Positions 13,605 to 30,941 of a stretch of 64,000 bases of DNA are shown here, one piece after another (position 1 is the stretch's first letter; each line of letters opens with the position of its first letter). The notes under the pieces are model-generated. The model ran no database searches. It was not told the DNA's origin and was given only the letters and a program-made list of their open reading frames with translations. The translations under genes and the position numbers were made by a program. The DNA is from Macrostomum lignano. Taxonomy: Eukaryota. Location of the stretch: contig NIVC01002099.1 of assembly GCA_002269645.1 (NCBI GenBank), positions 22,710 to 86,709 on the forward strand, read 5' to 3'.

Positions 13605-15043
13605 TTATTTTTCTTTTTTCTGGTTCTGCTGCTGCTGTTGGCTCTGCTGTTGTTGCTGAACTGCTTTACCAGCTGCTCTCTGCTCAGCCGGAGCCAGGAA
13701 AAACTTCTTGTCCATTCGCACCAGCCAAGAGGACACCTGCCGCTTATCGGCTGAATTTTTGTGCGCCATTTTGTCATTGACTCGCTCGATCATGGACACG
13801 ACATCCTCATTCTTACCAAACTGCTGGAACACCGAGCATAGCGAAGTGATGAATCGAGACCCCTTTGACCCCTCTCTCGCACTCGTCTCTAGTGGCACAG
13901 TTGAGTGCGCCACAATGACGTCCTCGCATTCAGGCAGAGGTTCGCGCTCGCATTGCTTGTCCGACACACCGACACTATGGTTCCGACACACCTGGAAAAT
14001 CAGCAGCTTCGGTTTATCGGTTCTTTTTCTGGCAAACTTTTGTAGAATATCTTTTTCTTTTGCATAATCATCGTCGCATCCGTACAGGTATCCTACTATA
14101 CCGTGAGTCATCAGTACAAGAATAGCAACGTCATCTTTTAACTCTAAATCATGTATTTGTTTCCCTGTCAGATTGGTTCTGATTGAAACTTTGAATCCCA
14201 ATTCAGTGAACACTTTTAACAGTCTCTGAGTGTCTTTCTCGGAACCCAAGCGATTGCCATGTCTGCCGAATATGAGATTGTTGATGATGAGCACGCGGGT
14301 GCTGGGATCGGGAGTTGAATAGCTTTGTTTTTCATCTGGCTGTGTCAGCTTCCACAGTGCCTCGCTGCTGCTTTTTGTCCCTTCACTACTAGAGCATTCC
14401 GGCACGGGTATTTCCGGATCGACTGTGGCTGGATCGACTGTGATTGCACGGTAAAATTTAGCCAGGCCACATTTTTTGCAAACTTTCTTCGATGACGATT
14501 TAGGTTTGTCTCTGCAGCGGACGCACTCTTTGCAGTTGACGCAGATCAGTGGTTCATGACTTGCACTGTCTTTGCACTTCTTGCAAGTGCAGTCAAAACC
14601 TTCCGAACCGACAGCACAAGAGCACAGCGTGACTGGCTCTGAATTATCAAATTTAGCAAGAAGTTCAATTATTTTTTCCTTTCGCTGCTCATCATCAGTT
14701 TTAATCCAAACGCCAAGTTTATCATCCTTTTTAAATTTATCATCTTTTTCAAATTTACTTGCGTTATCTAGCTCGTAGCTAGCAACTACAACTGTAAACT
14801 TTGAAGTGTCGTCTGGTGCTGTCTGAAAGTCTCCATATTCAGCGTGCACTTTCCATCCATTTGCCTCCAGAGCCATGCGGAGTCCGTCAATTTTCTTCTC
14901 AGTTTGCTTGGCAAGGATGAGAGCCGTTTTTAATGGTTTGAATCCTAAAATTTTAGACAGAATTACTGTAGATGCGAATCAACAAAGTTCTGAATAAAAT
15001 TAAATTTTGCCTTACGTTTTTGGTGATAGTGGCTCTGATGGCA
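13605..15043 (-). CDS. Caspase (C14A-like, predicted active) with N-terminal alpha/beta domain and Cys-rich linker; main exon 14944-13605, probable micro-exon 15043-15016
   Basis: p20 motifs RVLIINN, NRLGSEKD, LMTHG (His), FQVCRN (Cys); p10 motifs STVP..SAR, GSRFI, KKFFL. Phase-1 acceptor ttttag|GA TTC extends the ORF upstream of Met-14876 (FKPLKTALIL). Confidence 0.85.
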
Positions 15044-15397
15044 CTGAAATGAAATCAACGGCAAGGTTCAAAAAAATAATTTATGCTTACTAGTGTAGAT
15101 ATAGGAAATTTTCGTTGAAAATGTGAGATAATTTAATTTTATCTGGCTAACTTTAATCTGTTTCTACATGTTAAACATTAGTTTTTCAATAAATCTTCAT
15201 CTCCAATACTGGCTCATGGAATATTTTCGAGTATTTGCATGACTGCGCATATGACAGCTACTGCTCAATTCTATATGGGTAGCAGCTGTGATTTTATGAG
15301 TTCGTAAGTGATTTGATCTGTACTCATCTGAGCGCCATTATGTGTACCATATCTAACGAAATGTGGTAATACACACTTGTAAAACAATATAAAGTAG

Positions 15398-27347: not shown

Positions 27348-30300
27348 CTAACCTTCTTTTTCTGGCGAAGGTTTTCCTTTCGGATTTTTTCTCTCGTGCG
27401 GCGGCTGCTCCGCTTCTGTCTTCAAACTGTGGTCTGTCTTGCACAAGAAGAAGTTTCTGTGCGTTAGCCATGTCCATCGTGGCTTTTCATCGAAACCATC
27501 CATTGAGGGGTGGTGAAATAATATGTTGACTTCGTTGATTAGTGAAACCACGTCCTTACTATTGGCATAATTGTAATATGCAGTACAGATGCTTTTGACC
27601 ATTTCGCTGCCAGTTTCACCGCGACGATGCTCAGTATACCTGCACGTGACCAGGCCAGCTTGGTTGTGATGTGATTCATCTGGATCCATGGGTATTTCAA
27701 GATACTGCGCCAGCTCCCGGCAATTATATGTGATATTCGTCCGTCCAACGTCCGCGTTTTCAGTGCCTCCAGTGGATTCTTGCTCACGACCTTTTATTCG
27801 TAAGTTGAATATCACGAGCTTTGGAGCTGACCGATAGCCAATGTTTTTTAAAGCACCGATAATTTCGGCTTCAGTTACTGTTGAGCCGTCCGAGCACTCA
27901 ATTTTACCGTCTTTTTCAAAAGCAGTGATGACGAGAATCCACAGGTTGTGATGCTCCTTAAACTCTTCAGCCGTACGAATCAGCTCGCTCGCCTTCAGGT
28001 TGTTAAATTGCACTACACCAAACAGCATGTTCTCAAACAAGTAGCACAGTCGGTCACTGTCTATCTTTGAACCTTCGAGTGCGTTAGCGCCACCGGTGGT
28101 CACGCAATTGACAACAAGAGCAGTTGGTTCGCCATGGCGCTCATAGTAACCCATTTTATCTTCGTTTTTTGTTGCGTCTGGCTTCATCTGCTGCAAATCC
28201 TGAGTTCCGAGCACTTCTGAGTCCTTTTTAAGATAATCTCTACTTTTCTCATTAAATCGGCAAGGCTGTCGAAAGCGCATGAATTTGGGTGTGCCGTATT
28301 TGAGGTCAACAATCTCTTCTCCCTCGATCGTAGTACTGATGGAAGTTTCGAATGATTTTTTACGAATAATTGACCCGATGCATTTCGTCTGCCAATTATG
28401 AGTTTGATGTTCCTGCAAGGACTTGAAAAAATGTTCGATCCGATCAGCCACTGCAACTTTATACAAGCAGAAAATGTTTTTGTATTTTTGTTGGTAGACG
28501 CTCTCAGAAAAGTCAACCGAATTATCGAACGACCGGTTGCTGTCAACCTCACAGTAGACAAGCAGGCAGCGCTGCGTTTTGGAGTCTTTAATGGCTTCGA
28601 GAGTAATCTGTAAGCTCAGCGAATTCCCCATTTCCTCATCATTCACGACAACAACAACTGAAAATCTTGTGCCCGAAAGACGCTCGATCAGCTGGTTTAG
28701 CTGGAGCTGACTGGAATCCGGATTCGAGGAAAAGCCGCAGCTTTTAATGAATTCAAAATATTCATTTCCGGCTTTTGCTTCAGGAGATTCCGAAGACAAG
28801 TTGCTGCTGAATACCGCAACGCAGCGTTGTTCAACTGAAATGCAAAACAGGTGAAGCTGCGGTAAAGCGTAAGCAGTACGCACGGTGTCACAAACTCATT
28901 GATACGCTTGTAACTAATTTCTACCTGCTATCTTACTAATCTTACTATCTTACTAATTTCAGTGTACATCCTGAATTTCTAATCACAAAGAAGGTTCAGT
29001 TTGTTCGGTGCGATGCTACCCAACAATGTCCAATTTCCCGAAGCAAAAATTTCCAATTATGTTTTTTATCTCGCGCTTGCAATTCCATTCTCGCAGGTAC
29101 ATCACTGTAGCGCTGTAGGTTTGAATGGGTGATACGTTGTTCCTTCACTTTTTATTGCTGGTTGCTTGCCATGAGCCAATGAAAAAATTAATAATTTACA
29201 TTTCACAGGTTGGAAAATATTGATTATCTCCTTTCTGCTCAAAAAAGGCTCGTCCACACCGCTATCAACGAGTAAAAAATGTGTGTGATTACATGACTGA
29301 TGTACTCTACATAGATCAATGTACAATGCACACTGATTTACCCGTTTGATGGCAGTGCGGACTGGCCTGGCCTCATGAATATGCTCTCGACACAAAGTCT
29401 GGGAAGTAAAGCCTCGATTGAATTTGGATAAAAACATCCCTATTGTGGCGGCCTGTGGTCTGCGATTGGTGCAGCGCTCGTGCACCGGCACTCTCAGCTA
29501 CCCCCAGCCGTACACATAGAGGCCAGATTAGGTTTGAGGCGTGCATGAGAGAGAGAGAGAGAGAGAGAGAGAGAGAGAGAGAGAGAGAGAGAGAGAGAGA
29601 GAGAGAGAGAGAGAGAGAGGAGCAACTGCAAAGCAATATATGGTAGCGATGAAGAAATATCTTAGGCTCTGAGAAGCCAATGCAGTCTGCGGATCCCCAG
29701 ATTGCTGGCATGCCAGGAAAAATGCCAAGCAATGCGGCCGTCAGCGCGTTTGGCCGTCAAGAAAGCTAAGCTTTCTTTCCATGGCCATAAAATTCACGCG
29801 AACAATACACAGCAGACGCCCACACAAATACGGAGCTTTCTTAGAAAAAGCTTTTTCGCCACATTCTTCCGAACCAAATCCGAGTTTCTTGTTTCATTCT
29901 AACTTGGCAATGATAATGCGCAATGGTATTGCATCACAGTCCCTGGTGGCATATTACAAAACAGAAGACTCTATTTGAGGCTTTAGCTATTTAGTTAGAG
30001 TAGGTGAGGCTGCGTGTGTAAAAAGCATTTAAAGAGCTTCAACTAAATCCAGAGTAAGGTCGACAGACTACCTATGATAATGAATAATACCTGACAACCG
30101 AGTTCAATGCTACTCGTAAACTCAAATTAATTCATACTTACCCTGTTGCTCCTTTTGTGGAGAGCTATCTTTAGGAATCGAGCTCTGTGGATACGATTCC
30201 ACATTTTCACCTGCAATAAAATAAACATCTTCATGATTTCATGCATCATTTGAAACCAGAATTTGTTATTCGAGCAATCGATGCATGATTAAGGATTCAG

Positions 30301-30941
30301 TTCGTCTGTCATCGCCTCTTAGTTTACCTCCTCTATTCTATTTATGATTAACCTAGATGATTATACTTTATTTACCTGTACATAGGTCAATTTTAAAAAA
30401 AATGGCATAGATTTATTGTGCATCATATATTCTCCTATCCATAACTGTGGTGTTGAGTTTCATAAAATTCGGATTGAGCTGTTATACATGTATATTTCAA
30501 TCGAGACCAAATTACAATCGCCGGTAGACCAGCGCTAAATTAGCATAATTTATTTTCTTCTGCACAAAAAACCATCGCGCAAATCATGCGAGCACATGCT
30601 CACCTGTGGCCACTGGAGCTGAGAAGATTTGGTTGCGGTTGCGATCCGCTAAAGCACCAACTGAAAATCAGATTGTTGAATTCGTTTATAAATGATGTGA
30701 TGTGAAACATTTATGATACAAGAACAGTGTTGTAATAGAATGCACCGTTGCAGACATTTACTGAACTATGGCTATGGTTCTACCAGCTAACTACATAATA
30801 AAAGCTCTCTATCCTGCGTATTGCGTGTTCCTGACAAGAGTTCAATACACGTATAACAAAATATCGTCAGCTAATCTTAAAGCAGGCTTTGCTCGGCTTT
30901 TGCTTACCTTCTTGTGTGTCTCCTGTGCTACTTGATGCCAT
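27348..30941 (-). CDS. Catalytically inactive caspase homolog (pseudo-caspase 2); predicted exons 30941-30908, 30660-30604, 30210-30142, 28834-27348 (alternative first micro-exon 28969-28954)
   Basis: Caspase fold (TALVVN, EGSKID..L, PKLVIF, GSEMV..IC, NFFL) with His replaced by F (VITAFE) and Cys by R (FNLRI). Main exon open for about 495 aa; acceptor ttttgcatttcag|TT GAA is phase 1; all upstream exons end in phase 1. Confidence 0.72.

Follow-up and report, generated by a model that had tools for sequence, protein, structure and literature searches.

A 64,000-nucleotide stretch of the genome of the flatworm Macrostomum lignano (contig NIVC01002099.1 of assembly GCA_002269645.1, positions 22,710–86,709; hereafter the window) carries on its minus strand four caspase-homologous open reading frames (ORFs) in the order dead-live, dead-live. 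In the ORF scan these are pseudo-caspase B (15398–16846) followed by active caspase A (13605–14876), and pseudo-caspase D (27348–28883) followed by active caspase C (25554–26894), with 0.32–0.52 kb between the dead and the live ORF of each module. Each module is probably a single gene encoding an X-pseudocaspase-X-caspase polypeptide, X being a domain of ~145 residues with a β-α repeat pattern that stands ahead of each of the four caspase domains. We favour a fused product because the junctions are in frame and of phase 1, the stops of the dead ORFs lie just past splice donors, database models are fused, and paralogues carry the dead and live units in one protein. A preliminary description of this DNA had placed the four units correctly and on the correct strand, but took each module for a pair of genes, a view at odds with donor–acceptor joins that keep the frame and share one phase across the two modules and another genomic copy of the locus, and with the fused database models. 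The DNA is animal, contains spliceosomal introns and is rich in micro- and minisatellites.

Units A and C match the Pfam family Peptidase_C14 (C14) with 113 bits (2.2e-32) and 99 bits (3.3e-28), respectively, and their best PDB matches are caspase-7, caspase-3 and CED-3. The preliminary description had credited them with the His/Cys dyad and both Asp-pocket arginines, and alignment bears this out. Unit A is in register with caspase-7 at LMTHG (H144), FQVCR (C186), the pocket Gln, GNRLGSEKD (R179 equivalent) and SAREGSKGSRF (R341 equivalent); C, likewise in register, has FMSHG, IQSCR, DDRLASLYD (R179 equivalent) and SSRKDGCGSRF (R341 equivalent) and keeps the Gln. All equivalents of the P1 Asp pocket (Arg179, Gln283 and Arg341) are therefore present in both. 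The C14 domain of A spans ~13698–14297, with the His codon at 14103–14105 and the Cys codon at 13986–13988; that of C spans ~25656–26306, with FMSHG at 26082–26102 and IQSCR at 25971–25991. The intersubunit linker of C is short and lacks Asp, which would fit dimerisation-driven activation rather than linker cleavage. The C-terminus of C carries NADNN repeats.

The upstream units are true pseudo-caspases, as had been proposed from their substitutions. Alignment places Glu in B (ILAEK, 15890–15910) and Phe in D (ITAFE, 27909–27929) at the position of the catalytic His, and Arg at that of the catalytic Cys in both (VHLRE, 15788–15808; FNLRI, 27789–27809; both codons CGA). Of the pocket trio, only the R341 equivalent remains in D, which has lost that of R179; B has lost the R341 equivalent and the Gln, and has an Arg near the R179 position that is shifted by one residue. 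Both frames are open despite the loss of both catalytic residues. The caspase fold that the preliminary description supposed holds for D by several methods: D scores 29.1 bits with Pfam C14 (gathering score 21.4; region ~27477–28124), finds CED-3 in the PDB by sequence at 1.7e-5, and yields an AlphaFold2 model (38-sequence alignment) whose caspase-like part has a predicted local distance difference test score (pLDDT) of 87–95. The top Foldseek matches of this model are all caspases (CED-3, E 2e-13; template modelling score 0.62–0.80, normalised to target, for CED-3, caspase-3 and caspase-7). For B the assignment comes from sequence profiles. Taken alone, B matches nothing in Pfam or the PDB; its C-terminal ~75 amino acids (aa) match the small-subunit region of the family (E 1e-9), and a hidden Markov model (HMM) of the five other pseudo-domains, built with B left out, aligns from end to end with residues 240–472 of B (39.5 bits, E 1.7e-14, one target). 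By this profile B is a caspase-domain homologue. No DED, CARD or Death domain was found in any of the four ORFs (Pfam, E≤1).

The X domains lie at ~16306–16740 (B), ~14500–14944 (A), ~28400–28834 (D) and ~26480–26917 (C), all on the minus strand. In X of D, strands and helices are predicted at pLDDT 64–81. Twelve X sequences scanned singly against Pfam (E≤10) gave no recurring family, and an X profile run against PDB sequences matched a designed Rossmann 2x3 protein only (E 9.5e-4); the Foldseek search of the D-unit model, in which the X part was included, was dominated by caspase matches. When X was compared by hhalign with a profile of caspase domains, it aligned weakly with the p20-like half (probability 21%, P 0.001), the conserved LLxxC of X coming to lie on the catalytic-Cys column (QACRG). 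In several of the X domains that stand ahead of active caspases, a His follows the third strand. We take the match only as a lead that X may be the relic of a caspase p20-like half-domain. The X domain of A contains a Cys-rich insert (~14480–14640, minus strand; CSCAVGSEGFDCTCKKCKDSASHEPLICVNCKECVRCRDKPKSSSKKVCKKCG) that the other X domains lack, with a CxC/CxxC spacing reminiscent of a zinc-binding module.

The proposed gene plan would lead from two or three short 5′ exons to a large exon encoding X and the dead caspase and then, over a phase-1 intron of ~0.3–0.5 kb (interrupted by a linker exon in gene 2), to a last large exon encoding X and the intact caspase. Gene 1 (B-A; all exons of both genes are on the minus strand) has a 13-base first exon at 18509–18521, with an ATG at 18521 and the donor ACCG|GTGAGC of phase 1, which is homologous to exon 1 of gene 2. 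Exon 2 (18093–18146; 54 nucleotides (nt), phase 1 to 1) encodes a peptide resembling the N-terminus of P0002, a UniProt model; a second, proximal copy of it at 16863–16898 may be an extra exon. The large exon (15424–16740; donor GATAACG|GTAAAT) contains X and, at ~15431–16129, pseudo-caspase B. It is followed by a 479-nt intron (14945–15423) with two ATTAAA motifs, and by the last exon (13605–14944; acceptor ttttag|GATTC), which contains the X domain with the Cys-rich insert and active caspase A. Gene 2 (D-C) has exon 1 at 30908–30941 (ATG at 30941; homologous to the N-terminus of the NCBI model P0003), exon 2 at 30604–30660 and exon 3 at 30142–30210, with phase-1 introns, then a large exon with X and pseudo-caspase D (27353–28834; donor GAAG|GTTAGT), a 33-nt linker micro-exon of phase 1 to 1 (26995–27027) with an in-frame ATG at 27025, and a last exon with X and active caspase C (25554–26917). 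The outer ends given in the preliminary description, 18521 and 30941, are thus plausible first exons, but the start it assigned to A, 15043, belongs to a degenerate 28-nt relic of the micro-exon within the gene 1 intron (15016–15043) that has lost its ATG.

At the junctions, the donor of B (last exon base 15424) lies 8 codons ahead of the stop at 15398–15400, and that of D (27353) a single codon ahead of its stop. For A, the acceptor (exon starting at 14944) precedes the first ATG of the ORF by 69 nt and is in its frame. The spliced joins are in frame (15424>14944 in B-A; 27353>27027-26995>26917 in D-C), and every intron, including those between the 5′ exons, is of phase 1. The fused coding sequences come to 885 aa (B-A) and 959 aa (D-C) without the 5′ exons, with one terminal stop each; with the 5′ exons, D-C reaches 1012 aa and B-A about 900–920 aa. 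In the X domain of A, strand β1 (TALILAK), which aligns with strand 4–10 of the D model, precedes the first Met of the ORF, so that a Met-initiated A would lose a core strand. The NCBI protein BOX15_Mlig027753g1 matches ORF D at 84% identity, and its gene is on contig NIVC01001342.1 of GCA_002269645.1 (locus L001). As this locus is collinear with the window, in reverse orientation and at 93–99% nucleotide identity, it is a second genomic copy, either an allele or a recent duplicate; the assembly is highly redundant (PMC5730564). The same donors, acceptors and gene 2 micro-exon are kept in L001. Two M. lignano UniProt proteins match ORF B at 92–99% identity. The UniProt models P0001 and P0002 read ...FFLDEDN|AFEPSTTALILAKQ... 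through the B-A junction into caspase A (AFEPSTTALIL...); an exact look-up of the two returned no contigs. P0003 continues past D and the micro-exon and takes in the first 48 aa of C.

The same architecture recurs in paralogues. An exhaustive HMMER search with a profile of the four units (A, B, C, D) retrieved 4370 caspase-like proteins; among the matches whose source was looked up, the N-terminal ~130 profile positions, which make up most of X, were covered in M. lignano only, and among the remaining listed matches a few reach back to positions 130–165. Word-indexed searches with B, D and the four-sequence profile returned only three M. lignano proteins and no orthologues elsewhere, and cluster searches brought up no additional members. 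The paralogues comprise P0006 (1017 aa, X-pseudo-X-caspase), P0005 (838 aa, pseudo-X-caspase), P0004 (691 aa, X-pseudo-caspase) and the solo X-caspases P0007 and P0018, and sit on different M. lignano contigs. In the gene of P0006, three small 5′ exons come before two large ones with a linker micro-exon between them, all joined across phase-1 introns; the gene of P0004 shares the phase-1 intron at the point where pseudo-caspase and caspase meet. Two tandem dead-live modules occupy the locus of P0006 (L002), and in that of P0005 a further caspase gene lies downstream. The dead-then-live order noted in the preliminary description therefore recurs twice in the window, twice in L002 and in P0004, P0005 and P0006 on other contigs; the pairing that it expected in further copies is found, but the recurring arrangement is intragenic. 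In public databases the family is labelled "hypothetical" or "caspase p20 domain-containing", the Mlig gene identifiers are absent from the searchable literature text, and no paper describing the family was found. So far the family appears fast-evolving, tandemly amplified and, in the databases searched, confined to Macrostomum.

We estimated constraint on the dead units from the ratio of non-synonymous to synonymous substitution (dN/dS; Nei-Gojobori, window against L001, with 95% bootstrap intervals), a check that the preliminary description had proposed. All four ORFs are open in both copies. The ratio is 1.20 (0.74–2.22) for D, 0.63 (0.37–1.01) for B, 0.82 (0.43–2.02) for C and 1.10 (0.50–4.12) for A (partial), at a dS of only 0.03–0.06 that gives the comparison little power. 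Because the live units A and C are also near 1, dN/dS cannot tell dead from live units, and with low dS and intervals spanning 1 we rejected it as a test of neutrality. The comparison suggests rapid evolution throughout the family, the changes gathering in loops, as in the L3-equivalent of D, where the two copies differ as HRRGE versus PLCDK.

Across deeper divergence, the six pseudo-domains (20–56% pairwise identity) can be aligned end to end, and the long frames are, as the preliminary description stressed, open despite divergence, being kept across 20–26% identity. Identity between dead and live domains is 34% in α4-α5-β6 against 23% in the p20-like part (for B against the active domains, 39% and 17%), and the active domains share 40% with each other in α4-α5-β6. 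In these alignments the dead domains are most conserved at the caspase dimer interface, α4-α5-β6 being the interface both in canonical caspases and in the cFLIP/procaspase-8 heterodimer (PMC4715348). In a neighbour-joining tree B joins the other pseudo-domains with 85% bootstrap support. Unit D groups with them in 25% and with its neighbour C in 26%; with no firm placement for D the tree gives no single origin for both dead units, and D may have been inactivated independently. The Cys-to-Arg change, noted as shared in the preliminary description, was rejected as a synapomorphy of B and D, the other pseudo-domains having Trp or Tyr at that position.

The main alternative, which we hold to be rather unlikely, is that each module comprises two genes, a free pseudo-caspase acting in trans on a free caspase, with the latter made from a spliced leader (SL) operon or started at the micro-exon ATG. 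An estimated 15% or so of M. lignano genes belong to SL trans-spliced operons whose spacers are below 1 kb, and both modules, with their ORFs on the same strand and 0.32–0.52 kb apart, fit the operon spacing criterion (same strand, <1 kb; PMC8629364). The upstream ORFs end at stops of their own, poly(A)-like hexamers (AATAAA/ATTAAA) occur in both spacers, and the ATG at 27025 in the D-C micro-exon, together with early in-frame Met codons in the A exon, makes caspase-only proteins possible. Elsewhere in the family there are the solo X-caspase genes P0007 and P0018, and in L002 one downstream caspase is annotated alone (P0014), the first module being annotated only as a 318-aa caspase. Database models are not uniformly favourable either: P0001 splices out part of B, and P0003 leaves C at an internal donor within X (~26808, CAG|GTAAGA), skips the caspase domain and joins a small exon 2.4 kb downstream (24265–24357, duplicated at 39289–39381), giving a pseudo-caspase-only isoform with a 31-aa tail. 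Transcript support is all second-hand, taken from the models that databases give for near-identical copies or paralogues; an AlphaFold prediction for fused D-C (5 sequences) was unreliable (pLDDT 40.7) and gave no model of an intramolecular dimer; and dN/dS, weak as it is at this dS, is near 1 in all four units. All of this counts against the single-gene reading. It has to be set against an in-frame phase-1 junction at a homologous site in both modules, in L001 and in paralogues ~20–30% identical to the window units. The NCBI models come from genome-guided RNA-seq assembly in which transcription units were cut at detected SL trans-splice and poly(A) sites (PMC5730564), and it is from this pipeline that fused models emerge. 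There is no ATG upstream of β1 in the X domain of A, nor in the micro-exon relic, and the ATG that ends the 35-nt SL leader (CGGTCTCTTACTGCGAAGACTCAATTTATTGCATG; PMC8629364) would be out of frame at both acceptors. We infer that the locus in the window yields mainly the fused mRNA; mixed outputs, namely dead-only through intron retention, fused and live-only, are quite possible.

Two further explanations accept the gene order and differ on what the dead unit does. The upstream units could be decaying relics of tandem caspase duplicates, carried along by read-through and with no function of their own. The loss of both catalytic residues, a p20-like half of B that neither Pfam nor the PDB recognises, the window–L001 ratios for D and B and the skipping of part of B in P0001 would all suit decay; yet frames of 482–511 codons are intact in two genomic copies, six divergent pseudo-domains align throughout, their interface region is as conserved as in active domains, D has a confident caspase-fold model, and the near-1 ratios are shared by A and C in a test without power. 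We regard decay as very unlikely. Least probable of all, to our minds, is an innate-immune sensor/executor system like paired NLRs (nucleotide-binding leucine-rich repeat receptors), a likeness drawn in the preliminary description; the dead caspase would then be an integrated decoy for pathogen effectors. Tandem amplification, a copy-number difference between the genomic copies (the duplicate C′, described below), high dN/dS and substitutions clustered in loops would accord with it, but Pfam shows no NB-ARC, LRR, TIR, death-fold or other sensor domain, the units stand head-to-tail and their product is probably one protein, and a literature search found no expression or infection data. We found nothing that links the locus to immunity.

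If each module does encode one protein, the best-supported model is one on the lines of coral Caspase-X: the dead domain may be kept because it supplies the live domain with a dimer partner in cis through the α5/β6 interface, much as cFLIP(L) pairs with procaspase-8. Through auto-inhibition or pre-dimerisation it could in this way determine how active or how specific the live domain is; we infer a regulatory role for the dead domain, for which the preferential conservation of α4-α5-β6 gives indirect support. The linkers between units contain Asp (LDED|N after B; CKTD and EKED after D) and could permit the release of units by cleavage. A broader scenario, which we consider improbable as a whole, is that Macrostomum, independently of corals, has evolved a lineage-specific and rapidly diversifying family in which dead and live caspases are permanently coupled, with X ahead of each, and in which alternative splicing and intron retention yield dead-only, fused and live-only products as a tunable death switch, possibly for defence or for stem-cell or germline turnover.

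Pseudo-caspases are rare but mechanistically important regulators of cell death; to our knowledge, cFLIP is the only one in humans, and covalently joined dead and live caspases have been characterised only in corals. In vertebrates, the genes CFLAR, CASP10 and CASP8 adjoin in the genome. The long form cFLIP(L), encoded by CFLAR, lacks the catalytic Cys and His and pairs with caspase-8 or -10 at the normal dimer interface (FLIP(L) is reviewed in PMC7586951), and the analogy drawn to it in the preliminary description is apt. It differs in that cFLIP is a separate product with tandem DEDs that acts in trans at the death-inducing signalling complex, whereas the flatworm ORFs lack DED and CARD and the partner is probably covalently attached. 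In Caenorhabditis elegans, CSP-2 and CSP-3 are caspase homologues without full catalytic capacity that restrain CED-3. They are encoded by separate, unlinked genes, and CSP-3 consists of a small subunit only; the flatworm dead units, by contrast, are full-length caspase folds with a prodomain of their own. Paired NLRs are NB-ARC/LRR receptors, usually encoded head-to-head, one of them with an integrated decoy, whereas the flatworm locus has no such domains and runs head-to-tail on one strand.

The closest counterpart is coral Caspase-X (Acropora millepora AmCaspase Xa-d), in which a caspase domain lacking the His and Cys precedes a complete one in a single polypeptide (Moya et al. 2016, PMC4715348). 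The arrangement is therefore not undescribed, as the preliminary description had supposed it might be. Like the flatworm genes, Caspase-X forms a multi-copy family; its authors proposed a cFLIP/caspase-8-like contact through α5/β6, found more killing when the inactive domain was removed, and called the type coral-restricted (PMC4715348). Relative to it, the genes in the window add an X domain ahead of each caspase domain (the paralogues P0004 and P0005 carry one X only), and the flatworm halves lie in different exons with a phase-1 intron between them. For the coral proteins there are functional data (PMC4715348), whereas the flatworm proteins are known here from sequence. In the neighbour-joining tree the dead and live M. 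lignano domains separate from five outgroup caspases with 76% bootstrap; the tree includes no coral Caspase-X sequence, and within that compass it suggests an origin independent of the coral type, which is probable. Among other predicted proteins with several C14 domains are those of Drosophila gunungcola (LOC128254441), Anabrus simplex, Leptopilina boulardi and Mytilus edulis (P0025, P0028, P0017 and P0034), which have two or three such domains, one of them without His and/or Cys. They lack X, are not close relatives of the flatworm proteins, and, as unverified automatic models, may have joined tandem duplicates into one. For M. lignano, a 2024 survey of caspases in lophotrochozoans reports only a caspase with a kinase prodomain (PMC11463336).

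Linked or fused pseudo-caspase and caspase pairs are thus already known; what is new is a flatworm-specific and apparently independent version whose prodomain is new and whose exon design is modular and of phase 1. If it is indeed a second independent occurrence, it would suggest that built-in heterodimerisation recurs as a way of controlling caspase activation. X adds to the non-DED, non-CARD caspase prodomains of lophotrochozoans, and the idea could be tested in vivo in M. lignano, where transgenesis and RNA interference work. For annotation, the lesson is that ORFs in tandem can be mistaken for gene pairs where their stops closely follow a splice donor.

Beyond the two modules, the window contains a 5′-truncated duplicate of caspase C, termed C′ (41283–42236, minus strand; tblastn, 92% identity to aa 141–446 of C). 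Its active site is intact and it scores 96 bits with Pfam C14, but it has neither an X domain nor an upstream pseudo-caspase. The duplicated block around C′ spans 38594–42237. C′ is missing from L001, along with ~13 kb of the window (about 30.7–44.1 kb) of which it forms part. Nucleotide comparison also identified a cassette of ~1.1 kb in five copies, comprising an ATG exon, exon 2 (and in some exon 3) and a presumed promoter. Besides the gene 2 copy (30100–31250), copies lie at 737–1853, 16817–17611 (degenerate), 18003–18858 and 44184–44627, all on the minus strand. They are 72–93% identical in nucleotides, whereas the coding exons downstream of them share only 20–30% aa identity, a likeness that points to gene conversion or to a promoter and 5′ exons moving as a unit. 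In the degenerate copy, which adjoins B, the ATG has become ACG and the donor is lost; the copy at 737–1853 implies a further module past the start of the window. In both genes a (GA)n microsatellite (17858–17978 and ~29550–29620) lies upstream of the large pseudo-caspase exon, with flanks (AGGTTTAAGGCGTGCATGAGAGA) similar enough to indicate that the flanking sequence is homologous between gene 1 and gene 2.

Near-continuous minisatellite arrays occupy 3440–13273 and 33822–38408, with units of 21, 59, 57, 40 and 25 nt in addition to (TGAG)n; one array, of the 25-nt unit, spans 4.6 kb. These arrays account for a strong GC skew and, on either strand, for long ORFs that are spurious (for example 5284–7932 and 12236–13277), and the long ORFs at 5.2–10.4 kb were rejected as genes, being minisatellite artefacts. 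The neighbouring gene (49511 to ~62000, minus strand) encodes a DNA polymerase theta-like helicase-polymerase, with a DEAD helicase at 58.4–59.1 kb and DNA_pol_A at 49.5–51.3 kb; its GC content is ~63%, against ~42% in the caspase cluster, and several minisatellites interrupt it. Between the modules, a 199-aa ORF on the plus strand (22688–23287) gives a weak C2H2 zinc-finger match (E 0.0076, under the Pfam cut-off) and adjoins a (GAT)n-rich low-complexity array (23357–23900); this region may be a transposon remnant.

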